This document shows, piece after piece, positions 32,311 through 49,151 of a stretch of DNA of 64,000 nucleotides. A program made the position numbers and the translations under genes. This DNA is from Schmidtea polychroa (lineage: Eukaryota). The notes under the pieces were generated by a model, which had not been told where the DNA came from, ran no database searches, and was given only the letters and a program-made list of their open reading frames with translations. The number at the start of each line of letters is the position of its first letter. The first letter of the stretch is position 1. The stretch spans positions 36,704,001 to 36,768,000 of the forward strand of contig CM097888.1 in NCBI GenBank assembly GCA_044892525.1. Reading direction: 5' to 3'.

Positions 32311-32715
32311 TGGTGGGTTACTGGTGGTCGAATGATTAAGTGCTGTTACCAGCGTAACCCAACATGCAACATTGTTTTTCCGCTTGGTACCCGTTGAGTA
32401 ATCAACGTTGGTACTGTACCAAGGGTTGAGTACTCGCAAAAAGTGAGCGCATCAAAGCACTATAATTGTCGAGTACTCCATGGGTTCATGGACTACCGAT
32501 AGAAGGTGTGTGTCCGATTTCTCAGGTCCCTTTATCAAAATTGTTTTCCCAACCTTACACACAAGCTCTCGTTTCTCAGGCAATCATAAGTATCTCAGAC
32601 ATTATTTAACGCTACAAAATACGTATTATTGTAACAACAAGCAAAAAAAAATATTATTTTAGTACTGCAAGGTATATAAAACACACTACAAAATTGCACA
32701 ACACGGAACAAAAGT

Positions 32716-33195
32716 TCAACTCGGCCGATGGGTGGGGCCGGTTAGTCCCAACGTAGACGTTTGCGATGAGCCCGCTTGCCTTTCATACTCGCCCAGTCTG
32801 GCCTTCTTAAATTTTTCACGGATGTTTCGCCCAAGCCGTTTTCTTTTGGGCTTATTTTCAGCGGCTGGGGGATATATGGTTGCGAGTTCAACGGCCAGTG
32901 GCCGTATTTGTCTTGCTGCGGATTCTTGCACAAATCGCTCGTTCCGCTCGGTCTCGAGCGCCCGCACCTGCAATTTCAGGGCGCGAATCTCCATTTGGTC
33001 CTGAGCGGCCTGTGTCTGCAGCTGGAGGATCTGGGCTGTTTTCTTCTTCATCGCTTCGGGACTAAACCAGGTCCCCTCGAACTCCCGACATTTTCCTTTC
33101 AATTTGTCCACCCGGACTCGGAGTTCGTCAGCACGTTGTTGGGCCTGCTCCCGATCCTTCCGGAGATTTTCCATTAACTTGTACACTAAACACAA
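32716..33195 (-). CDS. GC-rich coiled-coil protein with basic NLS-like cluster (159 aa; may be a second exon)
   Basis: Heptad-like LRKDREQAQQRADELRVRVDKL and MEIRALKLQVRALE; KPKRKRLGRNIREKFKK; TTTAG acceptor-like site near the ORF start. Confidence 0.65.
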   Translation of the reverse strand: MCLVYKLMENLRKDREQAQQRADELRVRVDKLKGKCREFEGTWFSPEAMKKKTAQILQLQTQAAQDQMEIRALKLQVRALETERNERFVQESAARQIRPLAVELATIYPPAAENKPKRKRLGRNIREKFKKARLGEYERQAGSSQTSTLGLTGPTHRPS

Positions 33196-33407
33196 CAGTT
33201 GTCAGTTTCCTTCATATCGAATAAAATGAAAATGTAAATTATTAATTAACGTTAGCAATTCCCGGTTACGACCTTATTGCTCTTATTCAATTTACTATAT
33301 GAATTCCAAGACTCAAAAGAAAAATTTCTTTTATTCAAACAATACACATTAGAAGATAGCGGTGCTATAGATATAATGACTAAAATAAGTTATTTATAGT
33401 CTAATAA

Positions 33408-33602
33408 TCACGCTTGGCGTTTGCGGGGCCTCCCTCTTTTTCTCGGGGGTACCGTGGCCTCCTCCAATTCTTCCAGGGGCACTCCCTCCTTTTCCGCCCT
33501 GATTTGCAGCTCTATCTTCTTAAGCCGGATCTGAGCGTCTTCCACATCCCAGGCCGCTTGATCTCGGGCCTCCTGCAACCGGTTATTCTCCGGCTCCTCC
33601 AT
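33408..33602 (-). CDS. 64-aa acidic/coiled-coil peptide with C-terminal AT-hook
   Basis: ATG-initiated, ends PPRKRGRPRKRQA*; GC-rich relative to host. Confidence 0.65.
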   Translation of the reverse strand: MEEPENNRLQEARDQAAWDVEDAQIRLKKIELQIRAEKEGVPLEELEEATVPPRKRGRPRKRQA

Positions 33603-33756
33603 CTACTTCGGGGCCCGTCCGGATTACTCGATCTGCGCAATCCAGGTCCCGTCCCTGACCCCACCGATGTATATGGTACCAGATGTACCGGGTCCGGAGT
33701 CGGGTGATCGTCTGCTGGTCAGTACCCTCGTCACTACTAGAGCTGGATTGAGACAT
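33583..33756 (-). CDS. 57-aa ORF overlapping the AT-hook ORF
   Basis: ATG at 33756, MSQSSSSSDEG..RYIWYHIHRWG; TGACGTC plus TATTTATA about 45-60 nt upstream. Confidence 0.45.
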   Translation of the reverse strand: MSQSSSSSDEGTDQQTITRLRTRYIWYHIHRWGQGRDLDCADRVIRTGPEVDGGAGE

Positions 33757-34774
33757 GTCTGTAATATAAATATTAAGACCCATGCATAACCACCTTGACT
33801 TATAAATAGACGTCACAACAAAACATACAGAAGTTTCTTGTTTAAAATCAATAATACTTAACTACTAAATTTATTATAATTAATATAAATACTTCTAACA
33901 TAACCAAATTTTATTTAATTTATTGATATACTTTTTAATTAGGTAAATTAAAGAAAAATTTATTAAAGTTAAGTGTTAACGTTAGAAAATTCATACCAGA
34001 ACCGAAAATCTCCAAAAAAAAATGGTTTTGTTTTAAATTATTATTTTAATCATTCGGCATTTATTTACCACTAGTTGGTAATTTGAATTTTATAAGTTGA
34101 AATTTTAGAATTTTTTAGGTAATTTTAGGTAAATATGAATATTTCCACTAAATGCGGTTACGCCAGGCGAGGGGTACTAGTGACGAGCTCAGTCTCTTGC
34201 TCACTTACTCTTCCCCTGGTTGTATTCGTTATAAGTGGTAAAATCATCGTTTATTCATTTGAGGTAATCTATTTCTTGATCTTATATACCTAATTTAAGG
34301 ACAATTTGATGATTATTTTTCCCAGCTGGAGTTATCGAGGTTCAGCTTCTGGAACTCGCCCTACGATTCGTGGTCCGTAATCAGGATTTTGTATTCAAAA
34401 CAAATTGTGCATGGTAATTTATTGCTCGAATAAAATTGTAAGAATTCTTTTGTTTCTTTAATTTAATAACAATTAGATATTTGATTACCCATTTGGTGTG
34501 AGCTTATGTAGTGGATCATACCCTCTCATCCATATCCCTAGATGACTTGAAGATTAGTGACCCTCTACCGGGGGGGGGGGGTGTTGCTAAAAATAGCTTT
34601 CCAGAATTCTGATCCCTCCGATTGGCTCAAAAGGGTTACTTCTAATTTTAAAATTTTTGGGAAATTCCTAAATCGATATTGGATTGATTTTTGGAATTAA
34701 TAATCACTACTAATAATAATAATCTATAATTGATATAGTATTTATAGGTTTAATAGCATACTCTACAATGATTA

Positions 34775-34775
34775 A

Positions 34776-34849
<74 letters not shown>

Positions 34850-35345
34850 GAATACCTGTAATTAATTTATATGCACTAAGGACAAAATTATTACTAACAA
34901 TTAAGTTATGTATAATCGAGGATTTAATGATAATGATAATAATAATGGTGATAATAATAATAATAATAGTAATGATAATGATAGCAATAATAATCATAAT
35001 AATAATAGTAATAATAATACTAATCATAGNNNNNNNNNNNNNNNNNNNNNNNNNNNNNNNNNNNNNNNNNNNNNNNNNNNNNNNNNNNNNNNNNNNNNNN
35101 NNNNNNNNNNNNNNNNNNNNNNNNNNNNNNNNNNNNNNNNNNNNNNNNNNNNNNNNNNNNNNNNNNNNNNNNNNNNNNNNNNNNNNNNNNNNNNNNNNNN
35201 NNNNNNNNNNNNNNNNNNNNNNNNNNNNNNNNNNNNNNNNNNNNNNNNNNNNNNNNNNNNNNNNNNNNNNNNNNNNNNNNNNNNNNNNNNNNNNNNNNNN
35301 NNNNATAATAACAATAATATTAGGGTTAATAATAATAATAATAGT
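34775..35345. repeat. (AT)n and degenerate (AAT)n microsatellites flanking an assembly gap
   Basis: (AT)n about 34775-34848; AAT-type repeats 34925-35029 and 35305-35345. Confidence 0.95.
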
Positions 35346-37790
35346 AGTATAATTTTATATGGTACAATTCGAAGTTTATATTTCCCATTTTAGAGGTTCC
35401 TATTCTATGATTTGGAAAGTTACTTTTTGGAATTTATAAATTTCCGTTTCTAATTTGGAATTTTTTTTATTTTCCAATTTACAAATTTATTCTTTGTAAT
35501 TTCTAATTATATATATTATAGTTTGTAATTTAATGATTTATGACTTTATATTTTATATTTTATAGTTTTATATTTTATAATTTATAATTTTATGTTTTAC
35601 AATTTAGGGGTTTAGATTTTATAATTTATAGTTATAATTTTCGTAGTTTATAATTTTATAGTTAATAATTCACGATTTTAGGTTTTATACTTTAGGATTT
35701 TATATTTCATGATTTATAATTTTATACTTTGCAATTGATGAATTTCTAATCAGCTTTACATGACTTTTTATGAGTTACTTTTGCGAGATCATCCCAGTTT
35801 TTCCAAAATGTTTTCAGGTTTGTTGGTAGCTATTCATAAACTATACTCCTGAGGTTCCACATTTATGTATAATTAGAAAAAAAAATTCCTGTACACAAAA
35901 TCTATAATTCCTAATCGGGATTTTCCACTAATGATTTACATCAATATAAATATCTCTAAGATCTTATAAATATTTCTAAAATTGTAACTAAGTATTTATA
36001 CATTTATGAATATTTCAAAGCGGGAATTGGATTTAAACTACCTACATTTACTTTGAATTAGCCTATCTAGATTAAGTTATACCTGTACGTATGCCGAATA
36101 TCTCTCTTGGTTCTATTACTTTATCAAAGATTCTTATTACAAAATCTAGTTCGGCATATGTCTAAGTATAATTGAAATTACCATTATGGATCAACTGGCT
36201 ACATTAATGTGAGTGCAAAATTGTGTAATTTTAGGTACGAGTTCTACTCAAATTAGAACCTTAGTGTAGAGTTATTGTTCATGATTTTAAATGTTGAATT
36301 TAAATATGTGGTGCATAGAAGGTCGGGAAGAATATTGCTTCCATGGCCCCACTGTGACCACTTCCACAAACCTTAGTGTTGAGTCAACCATTTACGGTCG
36401 ACCTTACATAAATACAAAGAGTCAGGCGGAGGGTTTCCTCGACCTAACTCCATGGCAGGACCATGAAGTAGTTCGACCTCCGGCTGACCCGAACAAAAAA
36501 GGGGTTTTATAGATAATAATAATGCATGTATGCATGAGAAATAGAATTTAAGAATCATATGCAGGACCGATCAGAGACGTACTCGGACGCCGCTGATCCG
36601 TCGGGAATTACTAAAGCATAAAATCTTAATAATATTTTTAATGAACAAAAGGTTGATATTAACATGATTACATAACATAAAATTACATCAAATCAAAAGG
36701 CTTACTAATAATTTTCCAGAAAATTCTTCAGCAAAATATTGGCATAAAAGTGATGATTGTGACTGAAACGTGTCAGTATATATACCTATTTAGTACACGT
36801 GTATGTATTGATGCATTAAAACAAACTCGAATTCTTTTTATTCCAGAATTTTCTATTTTGCGATTTTACTATTTTTAATGGCAATTTTTGTGCCATAATT
36901 TTTGTTTTTATTTTTAAATTTTTATTTTTTAATTATTTTTCGTTAATTTGACATCCATGATGGATTTGGAACGGTTCCAGAACATTCCATGTTAATTTTA
37001 ATTTTATTTTTATTTTAACTGATGTTTTATGAATTTCTTTTTAAGATTTTTTATTTTTAATACTAATTTATTTATTTTCTCTAACTTTTATTGTTCTAAC
37101 TGGCTTTTGTGATGGTCATCGCCATTTTTATGGAATGTTCTGGGTTTTCTGGAAATCTTTACTGTTTTTACTGTTTTTAAGTTATTCGAGTCTGTTTTTT
37201 GTAACTCTGTGTTTATTTGGTTATTTTTGAGTTAGATTTTTGCATCACTTCTTGCTTTTGTATAATTTTATTTAATTTCTTTGTTTATGTTTTTGTTGCT
37301 TTCTCCTTTAGTTAATATTGTTTATTTGGTGTAGTTTTTAATATTTAACTATACTTTTTGCTTTTTGCATGCTGTGTACTTACACATTTCAGTCATAATT
37401 AGAAGTTTGGGTCTAGAAATCAGTTCTAGCCCAACAATATGCTTTGGCAATTTTTCTTTTTATTCTTTTGGTGTAAGTGTTTCTTTTTTTCTTATTTAAG
37501 TCTATAATAAAGATTGCCTTAATTTTTATTAAAAATTGATTTTTATAGGTAAATTTTAAGTAAAATAATGCCTTAAATTTTTAACATAACCTAAAATTTT
37601 ATTATAAATCGCAGAATTGCTCGAAAATATTGCTTTTAAAAAATAAAAAAGAAACGATATATAAATTAATTTTATTATTTTTGACATCATACAAAATTTT
37701 AATGGTGAAATTTCTTTCTTACAAGATAAATGCCTTAAAAAATTAACATTTACAGTCTATTTTTGTACCCTAAATATCGCATACTACGTA

Positions 37791-42718: not shown

Positions 42719-44239
42719 CAGCGCCGGCTCTAGCATTAGTAGCGCCCCGATGCGAAACTCATTTTAGACGCCCATTTATTTTATTGGTTTTTTGGAATTA
42801 ACGTAATTTAATTGGCAATATTAAATTTGTAATAAAAACATTAAAAAATTAATAATAATTCTTTTCCAAGTGAAATACAGGTTTTATTTTGTTTATATAT
42901 TTTTTTATTTTATTGAAACAATATTATAATATACAAAAATTACATAACATACATATATTTTGTATAAAAATTGACAAAACTATTATTCTAGATATTTACT
43001 TTTCTAGCTTTTAAACTGGCAAATTCATCAATTAAATTATGTATATCTAATTTGTCGCATATATCACTTTCAATCGATATCATTGCTAAACCAACTAATC
43101 TTTCTTGTGAAATTGTTGATCTTAAATAATTTTTAATTAGTTTAAGCTTCGAAAAAGATCGTTCTCCGCTAGCAACTGAACCTGGTAAAGTTAAAGATAT
43201 TTTAATAGCAATTACAAAATTGGGAAAAATGGAATCCAGTAGATTTTTATATATATATTGCAAGATGTTTAGTGGGTTTTCAAAGTCTTTCAAAAATTCC
43301 TTTGCTATTTTTATTTCATTAAATAATTCTGTTGCAGATATATCTTTTTTCTCGCCATCGGTTAGCATTATTTCTAAATCAGAACAATGTTTTTTTAATG
43401 TATTATCATCCATTTTGTTAATTTCTTTTATATTATGTATAAATTCAAATTTTTCACTATATTTTGTGAAAAGATTAAACCTTTCTTTTAAAGAATTGAT
43501 AGTAATATCTAAAATTGGCAGAAAAAATGATATTTTATATTTAAGTATCGGATCAACTGGCGTTTCGTCTACAGATTCATAACCAAAAATTTTTTTCTTT
43601 CTTCTTCGTAACGTATTATCTTTGAATTTCGCAGGTATTTCTAAATCAGCTGCTATATTTTCTGCCGTTTGAAGAATAAGACTAAAATTTTCATCGGATC
43701 TATATTCTTCAATAAATTTAATAAGACTATTTAACGCAACTGAAGAAACATTTAAGTTTTGATTTGGATTTTGGAGCAGTTTACTAACAACGTTAACTTT
43801 ACTTAAAACATCGTACCAAATAACCACTGAACATATAAATTCATACTCTTTTATTTTGAAAGCCACAGCCTTAGCTTCATGCTTTGTATTATTATCTATT
43901 TCTAGGTTTTCATAAATGTCAACTAAAGCATCTAAAATTTCAGCTATTTCAAACCTAAGTGGTTATATATAGCAGGCCGTTTCAAAATAAATTTATGCAT
44001 GTATAATTTATTTTGTTTTGCGAAATAATTAAACAATTCTTAAACACTTCGAAAACTAGTAGGCCAGTAGTTTTTCAAGGAAATTTTATTTAAAAATAAA
44101 AATTCTTATTAAAATAAAATTTGTTAATGGTTTTTTTGTTAAATATTAAAAAGAAACTAAAATTCTAAATTGTTTAGCGCCCTTTCCGAGAGGCGCCCCG
44201 ATGCTTTGCATCCACCGCTTCCAACTAAAGCCGGCCCTG
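42719..44239 (-). mobile_element. non-autonomous hAT (ZMYM1-like, 1521 bp) retaining the transposase C-terminus
   Basis: TIR CAG(C/G)GCCGGCT(C/T)TAG; perfect 8-bp TSD CTTACATG; ORF 42988-43866 with SVASGERSFSKLKLIKNYLRSTISQERL. Confidence 0.93.
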
Positions 44240-44649
44240 CTTACATGCACTCTTTGCATGAAATAAAAACTTTATAATATACAAAAAAATCAATAAACTG
44301 ATATTAACAAAACACTCAACTTTATGTTTGTTAAATTTAATATTGCCTGAAATAATAATTTTATATACACCAAATTCCAATGAGATATAACTTCTAAAAT
44401 ATACCGTGTTAAATTTGATAAAAACTGCATATAAAATATATATGAACTCACCTGTGTGATAGGCATTCATAAACAGTTGCACCTGCCAATTCGAAAAAGG
44501 GTAGAAAAAATTAATGAATCATACATACACAGTAATTTGCTGTATTTGGTTCTCGGTGAAGACATTTCAATAGACCAAACTAACAAAAAAAATTTGTATA
44601 CTATTTGGCTCACAAAACTCATTGTTGTGAGTTGGTCCTTCTTGACTAA

Positions 44650-44880
44650 TGATGGATTTTCTTTAATTCTTTTAACAACTTGTTGGTGGTTTTCGTTACG
44701 AACATTGAAACCGTTTACTTAAATAAAAAGATCGTTTGTTAACAGTCCAGCTTGGAATGCTGGACAGTTCGCTTCGACGTTGCCGATAAATTGACCTGGT
44801 TTATTGGCTTTAAAACGGAAATTAAATCCATAGCCTTCTATTCCAGATTTGATAGAGTAAGCAGGATCAGGTTGTCTAGT
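44650..44880 (-). pseudogene. NHERF-type PDZ domain fragment (part 3 of chimera)
   Basis: GYGFNF..KPGQFIGNVEANCPAFQAGLLTND..*VNGFNVRNENHQQVVKRIK. Confidence 0.8.
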
Positions 44881-45202
44881 GCTATCAAATAAATGTAATT
44901 TCGAAAAGGTTCCGATTAACAGGCCATTCGGATTAAAAAATACTGACGAATTGAAAATTTTATTCGACCTAAGTTCGGGAATGTATTCACCAACTATCCA
45001 AATGGCGCATTCTTTAAACGCTTTAGACAGCATTTGACAAGTTTCTCCATTGTGAATATTTTCACTTTGTTGCATACGATCTTCCAAACGGATAGTTGAA
45101 GTATTCTGGTAATCAGATTAATTTAATTTTCGATTCAACTTTAGACAGATTATAATCTTCGCGAGAAGAAACGATATTTTGAATTAAAGCTACTTTAAGC
45201 AT
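44881..45202 (-). pseudogene. NIT2: omega-amidase/nitrilase N-terminal fragment (part 2 of chimera)
   Basis: MLKVALIQ..NLSK..KLI*LPEYFNYPFG..GETCQMLS..IPE..IFNSSVFFNPNGLLIGTFSKLHLFD; one stop and one frameshift. Confidence 0.8.
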
Positions 45203-45421
45203 TTTAGATTCATTAACAAGATTTAAAAAACTACGTGCATATTTAGTTCTAGCAGATTTATAAATTAATGATGATTCGACGGAAAGTTTGCCTTCGACTA
45301 AATTATTGATCGGAACAAGAATTGCATTACATTGTAATTTATAAATATCTCCAGACCAAAATCCAATTTTTCTGTTACTATCGGGTAGAAATAAATCGCC
45401 AGCATAATTGGTATTGAACAA
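45203..45421 (-). pseudogene. macrodomain N-terminal fragment, GDAP2-like (part 1 of chimera)
   Basis: KIGFWSGDIYKLQCNAIL..NN..SVESSLIYKSA resembles the macro GDI..L..DAIVN motif. Confidence 0.65.
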
Positions 45422-46339
45422 AAATTCTATAAGTAATACTAATAAAGGAATGAAAACAAAGCCTTTTCAGATTTTCATGCTACATTTAAATTATAATTAA
45501 TATACATAACAAATATCGAATATTTAAACAACTTTTTTTTTATAAAAATTAAAAAGTTTTTTCCTTCAAATGATTTCTGATTAAATCACTACACTCTTCC
45601 CTGAAGTGATGACTCCTTTTTAATAGAGGGTAAGTAAGGATTTAAGATATTACGCGTCATACCTTTAGGAATGACTCATGGTCTCTTTTCTACATTGCGT
45701 CAAAGTGGTCATGTCAAAAATATCGATGACTCGACATTTTTATAACAGAAAAATAAGTTTTTAAGGGTGTTTGTATGAAGTGTTTTTATGAAAAAGTTTG
45801 TAATAATTAAAATAAATATTTAACTTAGAATAAGGTATGAATAAATTAACTTATCAAACTTTTATTTAACAAATATATTAAAATAAAAAACCTTTGTTAG
45901 CCAATGATTCGTCAATTACAATAATAGTTTAATGATATTCCAGAGATAGATAAGTCAAACCATCGTTACCCCTCAACCAGCCTAAAACTATTTCATTCAG
46001 TGAAGCTCAATTTCGGGAATTACTAGATGAGCTCGGAGTTCAAATTCTCAACCTAACTCATTCAAATTATAACCCTAATTTTGGGAAACAAGATTTTCAT
46101 TCTTTATATACTAAATAATTTTTAAATTTTAAATTTTTGGAGTGCTTTCCTAAAGGAGAATAAATAGAAAATTCAACTTCTTACTATGAACAAAAAAACG
46201 GTTGTTTGAATTTGTTAATATAATTTATTCATTTATGTAAATATTCAATATTAATTTAAATTGATTATTTAAAGTTTAAAATTGATTTCAAATGAAGAAA
46301 CATTGCTTGTGCCCCAGACTCAACTAAAGGGAGGTGAAA

Positions 46340-47049: not shown

Positions 47050-49151
47050 TGGCGACCACGGCAACAAACCTATTGATTAACAGGTTGCTACCAGAAAGAT
47101 TCCACGGAGATGATGACCTGGAAGAATTCATCAAAGAATGCCAAAATATTTTTAATATTACAAAAACATCTGTCAAGATGCAGATGATTCTAGTGACCAC
47201 ACTGTTGAAAATAAACATCAGGCGGATAAAACCATACCACAAGAATATAGACCCCCAAAACGACTCACCGAAAGACAAAACACAAACCCAAACACAAACA
47301 AAAAAACAACCAATTCACAAAAACATCACATTCAACCACAAAAATTCAATCAAAATTTTCGACAAAGACACAATACTAGCTCCACTATACAAAAAACGTT
47401 ACAGCGAATGCTTTAAATAAAAACACAAACAAACACACGCACAAACAGCGTTAATTGTACAGTTTTTATTTTTCTTGTAAATACAAAACAAAAGGTAAAT
47501 TTTTAATTTTATTGAGGTTGTAAATACAAAGAAACAGAAACAAAATACATAAAAACATATAAAACACACAAAAAAAAAGGTTATTGAATGTAATTTGTTT
47601 CACGTTACTTTTTATTGACTCATGTTAACCTCCGGTTTTAAAGGGGGAAGTTATGTAATGTACAGCTATTTTTGTTAGTATTTTAGTATACACAATTAGG
47701 AATTGTGTATACTAAAATATAAAATACCACCATCTGGGAAATCCAGATTTTTAAAAAAACTATATAGCGATAATTTACTATAGTAAATTATCGCTTATAG
47801 TAAATTAGAAATTAAAAAAATTGAAAATTAAAAAGAAATCAATATCGTGTGGTTTTTGAGACTACGTTTTATGAACTACAATTTTTTGAACGACAATTGA
47901 ACAACGATTTACGAAATACAATTTTGGAACTACAATATTCAACTACAATATTCTGCTACAAACTTCAAGAAATATCAGAAGGTTCTATTTATATTTTTTG
48001 GTTGTAATAAAGTTTTAAAGATTCAATATTTAGTTATTGTTTTGTGTTAGATTTATAACTCTGTAATATTTGCAACTACTACATTTTTAAACATAACACG
48101 CACCCCGATTGTCCCGCTACAAGTTTTAACGGTGACTCTTTCGGGCTCTTCAGAATCTTCATCAAATTAACATAACATTAACTTAACAATAATTTGTCAA
48201 CAATAATATAACCACATAAATAAGATAGCTATAAATCATAACAGATAATAATTCAGTCATAACTGAATTATTAAACCATTATACGATGAATATGAAAAAT
48301 CAGAAGGAAAAACATTTGAAGAGAAGCTCAGATCAGCATTTTCGAGGCCAAAATCATTATTCGAAGACTTAAAGGAAGCTCTAAATTATGAACAAGGATC
48401 AGATTCAGCATACCGCTTAATCGAAAAAGTAGAGAAATTAACCAAAAGATTACTGCGACATGAGTGGAACGAAGAAGAAATTAAAAAGTGCCTGCTCATG
48501 AATGGGGCTCGAGAGAAAAAAGTTAAAAAGGAAATAGAAATGCAAGAACTATAGACGTCAGAAGAAATTAAAAGCACAATTAGAAAAGTTGAGAAAGTGA
48601 ATAAAGCTATAAACCATGTTAACTCCATCCGCCCTATAACATATATGAAACCTGTCAAAAGCTACAGAGATGCCGTTCAAAGACCCGCACAGACAAATAC
48701 GATGCTAATTTCAAAACCATTGGAAGCGACTAAGAACGTTGTATGCTGGACATGCCAACAACCAGGTCATTTAAGCCGAGAATGTACTATGAAGAGGAGG
48801 ATTCAGTGTCTTGGATGTGGATTATATGGACACGTACACCGAGAATGTCCAAACATTCAGTGTAGGAGATGTCATCTACAAGGTCACAAAGAAACTGAAT
48901 GCTATACAAACCTAGAAAGATTTAAGCCGAAAATGAATCATTACGGAAGAAATAATGCAGCACACCGAAATAAAGGAGGCCGATTTCAACAGAACAATCA
49001 GTATAACAGAAGAGAGGTAGCAGCAATTGGAAATCAAGATGCAAACTATCAACTGAATTATTCAAGTGAAGCCGAAGAGAAATACGACGAAATGCAATAC
49101 CCAAACGAGGAAGCTCCATCACAGGAGGCGATGATAGGAACCATTTATTAG
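47049..49151 (+). pseudogene. Gypsy gag with three CCHC knuckles, interrupted by a ~1 kb insert
   Basis: LPERFHGDDDLEEFIKEC (47080-47200), resumes LYDEY near 48272; CWTCQQPGHLSREC, CLGCGLYGHVHREC, CRRCHLQGHKETEC. Confidence 0.88.
47640..48100 (+). mobile_element. PPT plus probable LTR of another element inserted in gag
   Basis: AAAGGGGGAAG followed by GTTATGT...ACATAACA inverted termini; no TSD identified. Confidence 0.35.

Follow-up and report, generated by a model that had tools for sequence, protein, structure and literature searches.

How do pieces of unrelated host genes come to stand in one reading frame, without introns, in an animal genome? The question is raised by a locus of the planarian Schmidtea polychroa, in a 64,000-nucleotide stretch of assembly GCA_044892525.1 (contig CM097888.1, forward-strand positions 36,704,001 to 36,768,000; this whole stretch is hereafter the window, numbered from its first letter). 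A preliminary description of this DNA had reported, on the minus strand, a fragment of a GDAP2-like macrodomain gene that runs in frame into a nitrilase beginning with MLKVALIQ and then, again in frame, an NHERF-type PDZ fragment. Translation confirms this arrangement, and there are no introns at or between the junctions. What does not hold is the accompanying view of an exon-shuffling product at a single locus, because the copy count reveals a dispersed unit with TG...CA ends, a 5-bp target-site duplication (TSD) and differently loaded subfamilies. The window copy is an ordinary dead insertion of this mobile unit, which is probably a solo long terminal repeat (LTR), or else a non-autonomous retroelement derived from an LTR and mobilised in trans, that carries RNA-captured host exons.

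A dispersed unit with defined ends

The mosaic is part of a discrete repeat unit of 971 bp with the termini 5'-TGTAGTGA ... CACAACA-3'. When the flanks of eight copies were aligned, sequence similarity was found to break off at the same two points, corresponding to window positions 45593 and 44623. The segments of the window copy are as follows, the whole unit being given first and its parts in the order in which the minus strand is read.

44623–45593, minus strand: whole repeat unit, 971 bp, 5'-TGTAGTGATTTAATCAG ... CAACTCACAACA-3', delimited by alignment of eight other copies and by matching of termini and TSD
45594–45598, no strand assigned: 5' copy of the TSD, aagag as read on the minus strand, matching the 3' copy (atgag) at four of five positions
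45479–45593, minus strand: non-coding 5' leader, the element's own, with a conserved ...GTTGTTTAAATATTCGA... motif; common to all subfamilies
45393–45478, minus strand: N-terminal module resembling a signal peptide (MKI*KGFVFIPLLVLLIEFLFNTNYAGDLFL), derived from another cargo gene, with a stop at 45467–45469; longer coding versions are found in copies L035, L036 and B2
45357–45392, minus strand: 3' part of GDAP2 exon 1 (PDSNRKIGFW), 92% identical to host C3:77045218-77045255; the 49-bp gt..ag intron of the host is precisely absent
45211–45356, minus strand: complete GDAP2 exon 2, the N-terminal part of the macrodomain, 92.5% identical to the host and ending at the last base of the host exon (...gttaatg/gtatg)
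45203–45210, minus strand: 8 nt of the 5' untranslated region (UTR) of a NIT2 paralog (aatctaaa; host aatttagc), from comparison with the host
45014–45202, minus strand: exon 1 of the NIT2 paralog, with its ATG at 45200–45202; parent C3:21505832-21506240 (L051), the 41-nt host intron being absent; lesions are a 27-nt deletion, a TGA at 45113–45115 and a frameshifting 5-nt deletion near 45080/45081
44871–45013, minus strand: exon 2 of the NIT2 paralog, ending ...HLFDSTRQ; copies are 85–98% identical to the host exon (median 93%)
44839–44870, minus strand: 32-nt remnant of a linker, segment X, present in longer form in L011, L012, L022 and L026; its genome matches are element copies only
44700–44838, minus strand: positions 49–187 of exon 1 of a small PDZ gene (GYGFNF...GFNV), with a TAA at 44719–44721; host C2:149705242-149705625 (L038), 58-nt intron absent
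44643–44699, minus strand: first 57 nt of exon 2 of the small PDZ gene (RNENHQQVVKRIKENPS); the rest of this exon and most of the tail, segment Y, are deleted in the window subfamily
44623–44642, minus strand: the element's own 3' end (…KKDQLTT, ...CACAACA); a 21-mer over this end has 95 genome matches, against 1 for its control
44618–44622, no strand assigned: 3' copy of the TSD, atgag, from comparison of termini and TSDs
44250–44617, minus strand: flanking DNA outside the unit, once read as a spliced tail; no second genome match (query positions 862–1231), open frames without a family match

TG...CA ends (TGTAGTGATTT... / ...AAACCACAACA) were present in every copy inspected. They form an imperfect terminal inverted repeat (TIR), TGTAGTGATTT versus TGTTGTGGTTT, with agreement at 9 of 11 positions, and a search at the unit termini for a TIR longer than 11 bp found none. 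Internal terminal direct repeats, as in TRIMs (miniature retrotransposons with terminal repeats), were sought within the unit and not found, and a search of four units for RNA families (ribozymes, tRNA-like, spliced leader) gave no hit within them. The 5-bp TSD is perfect in 15 of the 27 units checked and matches at four of five positions in a further five, where about 3% per unit would be expected by chance for four or more matching positions; its length lies in the range of solo LTRs (4–6 bp). The fourth segment with GT-AG introns that the preliminary description had placed at 44250–44620 falls outside this boundary, as the unit ends at 44623 and is followed by its TSD; no other genome match to that segment was found at the sensitivity of the search.

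The genome that was searched comprises 781 Mb, with four chromosome-size contigs of 272, 190, 145, and 93 Mb. A DNA search with the window mosaic returned 56 matches, and the same mosaic with the same junctions occurs at at least eight other loci, each with its own TSD. The PDZ module was counted at least 76 times and the tail at least 120 times, while the linker, NIT2, and macro modules are found about 25–35 times each. Patterns covering the termini were counted genome-wide, with the reversed patterns as controls: two variants of the 5' end (20/21-mers) gave 139 matches versus 13 and 132 versus 44, and the 21-mer of the 3' end gave 95 versus 1. Judged by sequence matches, the family occupies 100 or more sites in the genome. 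At one of them (C1:32908909-32909072), two family 5' termini stand head to head on opposite strands, 144 bp apart, which suggests adjacent or nested insertions. A tandem array at C2:174748534-174815319 (over 20 units with a period of about 1726 bp, TTTAGTGAGATAATCAGAAA being present in each) yields near-matches to the 5'-terminus pattern and is probably an unrelated satellite.

Units range from about 0.2 to 1.9 kb, and the same ends enclose very different interiors. What all subfamilies have in common is limited to some 130 nt of 5' terminal and some 25 nt of 3' terminal sequence. The versions encountered are these.

Window-type subfamily: cargo of signal peptide, GDAP2, NIT2, and PDZ
L004–L008: without the signal-peptide module, GDAP2 from its 5'UTR onward, otherwise as the window type
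L011, L012, L022, L026: NIT2, a longer linker, full PDZ, and tail, without macro
L013–L019, L045: signal peptide, GDAP2, 27 nt of NIT2, and a prominin-like transmembrane/Cys-rich piece
L037: other cargo and PDZ, with a 344-aa open frame
A2: a spliced copy of all three exons of the PDZ gene
B2: a longer cDNA of the signal-peptide gene
B1: a minimal unit of 179 bp, leader and 3' end only

The family shows successive loading stages, with minimal, one-gene, two-gene, and five-segment versions. The uninterrupted frame of L037 (L037:2055-3086, C2:95062554-95063585) fuses about 215 residues of unassigned cargo to the PDZ block; this extra cargo is partly common to L035, L036, and B2, and a Pfam search with it gave no match. 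Sources for linker X and tail Y were sought in the genome, and element copies were the only matches.

Captured exons, junctions and reading frame

As far as the sequence can be read, everything between the ends is cargo, consisting of intron-free 5' portions of host mRNAs arranged head to tail in one frame. In the window subfamily the order is the N-terminus of a secreted-protein gene, GDAP2 exons 1–2, the NIT2 paralog from position -103 through exon 2, linker, PDZ exons 1–2, and tail. That the three named fragments come from separate host genes is borne out, since all three parents were located in the same genome.

The GDAP2 parent (C3:77.045 Mb) reads ...aatttag aagattatttcattattaaATG... in exon 1, followed by a 49-bp gt..ag intron and by an exon 2 that ends ...gttaatg and continues with gtatg; host intron 2 is about 6 kb long. 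The elements carry the 5'UTR and exons 1–2, with the first intron removed to the base. Their GDAP2 block reaches to the final base of exon 2, after which comes AAT(C/T)TA(A/G)A-ATG of NIT2 and not host exon 3 or intron; the start of host exon 3 differs from it. The match to the NIT2-paralog parent (C3:21.506 Mb) runs from -103 through exons 1–2 with the 41-nt intron gone, and the block ends exactly at the donor (...agaccaa/gtgaga) in 12 copies and within 2 nt of it in five more. The PDZ parent is a small single-PDZ gene (C2:149.705 Mb), whose 58-nt intron is likewise gone from the elements. Host exons were compared exon by exon, and no joined spliced model was used in any search. In about 18 copies per junction, the exon alignments begin at exon base 1 and finish at the last base of the exon, across every lost intron. 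Compared with the host exons, the GDAP2 blocks are 92–96% identical, NIT2 exon 2 is about 93% identical, and PDZ 87–89%. Another NIT2 candidate, at C3:21.549 Mb, was rejected as parent, being only 41–48% identical, in favour of the neighbouring paralog; macro loci retrieved by a Pfam Macro search gave no match to the GDAP2 piece, and its parent came from a peptide search.

Comparison with the parental exon edges thus shows introns precisely missing and two block ends (GDAP2 and NIT2) placed exactly on exon-2 donors, which argues for an RNA route. The other junctions show microhomology. The heptamer AATTTAG stands on both sides of the GDAP2 block and is also found at the 5' edge of that block in L004 and L005 (host NIT2 reads ...gaagAATTTAGcATG, host GDAP2 ...AATTTAGaag). 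The signal-peptide module joins GDAP2 in mid-exon at CCCGAT (Pro-Asp), and the internal deletion between linker and PDZ has a 9-bp overlap. Because of this microhomology at non-splice junctions, template switching by reverse transcriptase, which the preliminary description had proposed together with Helitrons and Pack elements, is a reasonable part of the mechanism; the other two makers did not stand. The idea that tail Y begins at a fixed splice acceptor was considered and rejected, as the common start had been set by the query and the ETP/LSR edge is revealed as a deletion by a copy with PDZ exons 1–3. Identity to the host is higher toward the 5' end and module counts fall from the 3' end, a pattern in the sequences which suggests that new cargo blocks were added stepwise at the 5' side.

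In the window copy, the minus strand from 45478 to 44623 is one nearly continuous frame, made up of the signal-peptide-like start (MKI*KGFVFIPLLVLL...), the macro fragment, the nitrilase (MLKVALIQ to HLFDSTRQ), a short linker, and the PDZ fragment. HLFDS had been described as running in frame into the PDZ domain. The frame is indeed kept, but the junction is not direct: four more nitrilase codons and the 32-nt remnant of a further segment lie between, and longer copies have about 187 nt more. These were deleted at a 9-bp microhomology (44830–44838) in the ancestor of the window subfamily. Similarly, the two stops (45113–45115 and 44719–44721) and the frameshift noted earlier are present, but the count was incomplete, a third stop (45467–45469) being located just upstream of the range then considered. 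The copy thus has three stops and one frameshift of its own, whereas its internal deletions are common to its whole subfamily (one also in L012).

The domain calls for nitrilase and PDZ are upheld by profile and structure searches (CN_hydrolase, Pfam E=1.8e-9; in the PDB, NIT2 structure 2w1v with E=6e-8 and NHERF1 PDZ with E=5e-6). The macro piece of about 60 residues is weak when taken alone, its sole PDB match being GDAP2 4uml with E=0.14. This call is nevertheless secure, because the piece is 85–93% identical to an exon of a host gene whose next exon matches the GDAP2 macro domain (6e-12). The nitrilase cargo is a fragment, not an enzyme, since only profile positions of about 16–123 out of 256 are present; these represent exons 1–2 and do not make up a complete alpha-beta-beta-alpha domain. 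The PDZ of the window copy has a stop and is without its first beta strand; the full fold corresponds to about 81 profile positions, and the PDZ of the sister copy L002 covers positions 8–76 (25.8 bits versus a cut-off of 23.2).

L002 (C2:41103184-41104225), which is 91% identical to the window copy, has an uninterrupted open reading frame (ORF) of 288 aa from the signal peptide to the last base of the unit (Pfam: CN_hydrolase 3.6e-13, PDZ 1.5e-5). In every copy inspected the open frame runs to the last base of the unit, and in every subfamily all blocks share one frame, for which the chance is roughly (1/3)^4. Pairwise ratios of nonsynonymous to synonymous substitution rates (dN/dS) among nine copies are 0.6–1.5 for most pairs, with a mean of roughly 0.85; pairs with the partial copy L010 scatter more widely. 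Judged by this mean, inserted copies decay almost neutrally, and any need for an open frame would then have applied while the family was active.

What kind of element the unit is

The TG...CA ends, the short imperfect TIR, and the TSD with its constant length of 5 bp bear the mark of an integrase of the retroviral type. The RNA-derived cargo, its addition at the 5' side, and blocks that start in the 5' regions of mRNAs fit reverse transcription with strand transfers. Because integrase-type ends and TSD are combined with cargo of this kind, a solo LTR or an LTR-derived unit is the simplest explanation. Capture would begin when the 5' part of the element RNA acquires a host transcript (exons 1–2), either by an end-to-end template jump or because the exon-2 donor is spliced to an acceptor within the element; for the GDAP2 donor, ttattgaAG/AATTTAG at NIT2 -8 is a candidate acceptor. 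Minus-strand DNA synthesis would then proceed to the 5' end of the host mRNA, and a transfer back to the element via a few bases of homology would duplicate AATTTAG. Near-neutral decay of the copies would follow.

Several points weigh against this explanation. The label LTR is drawn solely from the ends and the TSD, and the stepwise capture model is one we infer, with an acceptor for the GDAP2 donor that is only a candidate. Paired copies around a primer-binding site, gag-pol, and a polypurine tract were looked for, and no same-strand termini within 40 kb were found among the matches listed. Two candidate LTR pairs were rejected, as each insertion had its own TSD and the members were hence independent. 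The flanks of about 25 units hold no shared internal sequence, and no BEL/Pao protease was found beside family termini when at least 150 protease matches were compared with the termini listed. The 3' edge of the PDZ block is a later deletion and not a splice edge. An autonomous partner element was not found among the loci and terminus matches listed. As for the BEL/Pao elements themselves, many of the at least 150 protease matches in the genome sit inside open frames of 1900–2240 aa, and for this reason the group looks recently active.

We consider it rather unlikely that the unit is a non-autonomous cut-and-paste DNA transposon, dependent on a Ginger/Tdd-like integrase-related or other transposase, with cDNA-derived host fragments inside (a "Pack"-type element with RNA-derived cargo). 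Conserved termini around a very heterogeneous interior, the existence of a 179-bp minimal derivative, and the 11-bp imperfect TIR would suit such an element, as would the lack of paired copies and of an internal retroelement region among the matches listed, and TG...CA ends are also found in Ginger and GingerRoot (PMC6839031). However, the TSD is 4 bp in Ginger1 and 6 bp in Ginger2 and GingerRoot, with TIRs of 40–270 bp (PMC6839031), so that the 5-bp TSD and 11-bp TIR found here do not match, even though the terminal dinucleotides do. Moreover, GingerRoot captures DNA with introns (PMC6839031), whereas every captured intron is gone from the planarian units, and the accretion at the 5' side, the age gradient, and the block starts in mRNA 5' regions fit reverse transcription better than gap repair.

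That the copies form a host multigene family for a functional, secreted macro-nitrilase-PDZ protein, with the window copy as a pseudogene, is very improbable. Some copies do have intact frames of 288–344 aa, every junction is in frame, and several pairwise dN/dS values are 0.6–0.8; but the mean dN/dS is near 1 and most copies have stops, all domains are truncated (nitrilase to about 16–123 of 256 Pfam positions, macro to about 60 residues), and ends of transposable-element type with TSDs surround every copy. A search of a collection of 5.8 billion proteins with the 288-aa ORF found no such chimeric protein, only ordinary PDZ and NIT2 proteins, the best NIT2 match being from a flatworm.

A single-locus exon-shuffling product, made by a Helitron, a Pack element, or template switching of a reverse transcriptase and followed by a spliced fourth segment, has hardly any claim left. 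Separate genes are truly fused in frame without introns, but the same mosaic and junctions recur at eight or more other loci with a TSD of their own, and the tail lies outside the unit. Helitron ends, which the preliminary description had suggested looking for in the flanks, are not there: in place of 5'-TC...CTRR-3' with a 3' hairpin and insertion at AT without TSD, the unit has TGTAG...ACAACA ends and, unlike Helitrons, makes a TSD, of 5 bp. That the assembly wrongly merged reads from three genes is practically out of the question, because the junctions are found again in eight or more other copies, each junction being repeated at many independent, diverged loci that are 85–92% identical to the window copy and are spread over four chromosomes.

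Related systems, neighbouring DNA and implications

The maize element Bs1 is an LTR retroelement with three host-gene transductions that form a hybrid ORF (Jin and Bennetzen, 1994; Elrouby and Bureau, 2001, 2010; summarised in PMC13317346). On comparison of their features, it appears to be the nearest described case, with the planarian family as its flatworm counterpart: in both, a non-autonomous element, of LTR type on the explanation preferred here, would have taken up several unrelated host-gene fragments via RNA and placed them in one chimeric frame. Bs1 has few copies, and its cargo lies between two LTRs, in the internal region. The planarian family belongs to an animal and not a plant host. 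It numbers at least 100 copies, in many subfamilies that differ in their load, and the cargo fills a free-standing TG...CA unit, with no internal region seen among the loci checked. Unlike those of Bs1, its blocks are 5' portions of mRNAs, two of them ending at exon-2 donors.

Foreign RNA copied in during reverse transcription is also known from abnormal template switching in BARE-2 and the Veju TRIM and from retroviral oncogene transduction, where captured host sequence is likewise without introns and the junctions have little or no homology. In each of these a single sequence was taken in, usually from another element or one oncogene, whereas at least five host genes appear to have been added serially here, in frame and at the 5' side. 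In chimeric retrogenes mediated by LINEs (L1 template switching), intron-free pieces of different RNAs are similarly joined by jumps of the reverse transcriptase at mRNA 5' ends. Such retrogenes are single insertions with poly(A) tails and variable TSDs of 7–20 bp. The planarian units differ in having defined ends and in that the mosaic itself was amplified; they end in ...CACAACA without poly(A) and have a constant 5-bp TSD. A further mark of LINE retrocopies is 5' truncation. Pack-MULE, Pack-TIR, and GingerRoot elements resemble the family as non-autonomous elements with conserved ends and an interior of host gene fragments, and GingerRoot also has TG...CA ends (PMC8277862; PMC6839031). Their capture is at the DNA level, with introns kept, long TIRs, and a TSD of 6 bp (GingerRoot) or 9–10 bp (MULE), none of which applies here (PMC8277862; PMC6839031). 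Neither the long TIRs nor the 8–10-bp TSD and retained introns that define Pack-MULE and Pack-TIR elements were found, the planarian units having an 11-bp TIR, a 5-bp TSD, and no introns.

About 750 bp downstream of the window copy, a 292-aa open frame (42988–43866, minus strand) has a hAT C-terminal dimerisation domain (Pfam 2.7e-10) and is the remnant of a hAT transposase unrelated to the mosaic family. On the plus strand at 48597–49151, a 184-aa ORF with three CCHC zinc knuckles (CWTCQQPGHLSREC...) looks like a Gag fragment of a retroelement. A TG...CA element at 32311–37436 has termini of another kind (TGGTGGGTTACTGG... / ...AGCCCAACA) and bears no relation to this family. The window as a whole has a GC content of 27.7%. 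Elsewhere in the genome, one unit is followed directly by an open frame (L022:2596-3330, C3:91417904-...) that contains an RT-like ...YVDDIF... motif and another conserved part; the frame resembles a piece of a retroelement, Penelope-like or other, which probably inserted next to the unit. In the flank of another unit (L012:1-56, C3:64865771-64865826), a hairpin cut by the end of the locus matches the Rfam precursor of mir-753, a planarian family, with 46 bits and E=1e-7, below the gathering score.

For the annotation of this genome, the family carries a warning, in that gene models of a macro-nitrilase-PDZ type represent transposon cargo and not genes. Exon shuffling by retroelements that builds hybrid frames from several genes has been documented mainly in a few plant cases, such as Bs1, and is met here in an animal genome. 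As the parents are still present and the junctions can be read to the base, the capture mechanism, with its donor edges, microhomology, and addition at the 5' side, is directly testable. More tentatively, and rather improbably in our view, the transcribed part of an LTR may grow by repeated capture of host mRNA 5' ends, cut at the donor before a long intron. In a similarly speculative part of this idea, each block, a start codon with the first exons, would have been placed upstream of its predecessor, and the frame would have been preserved because translation, once begun in the LTR, continues through the cargo into the element. The Gag of Ty1 starts in its LTR. If such growth is real, the family would propagate itself and shuffle exons under the guidance of splice sites, in an animal with spliced-leader trans-splicing.

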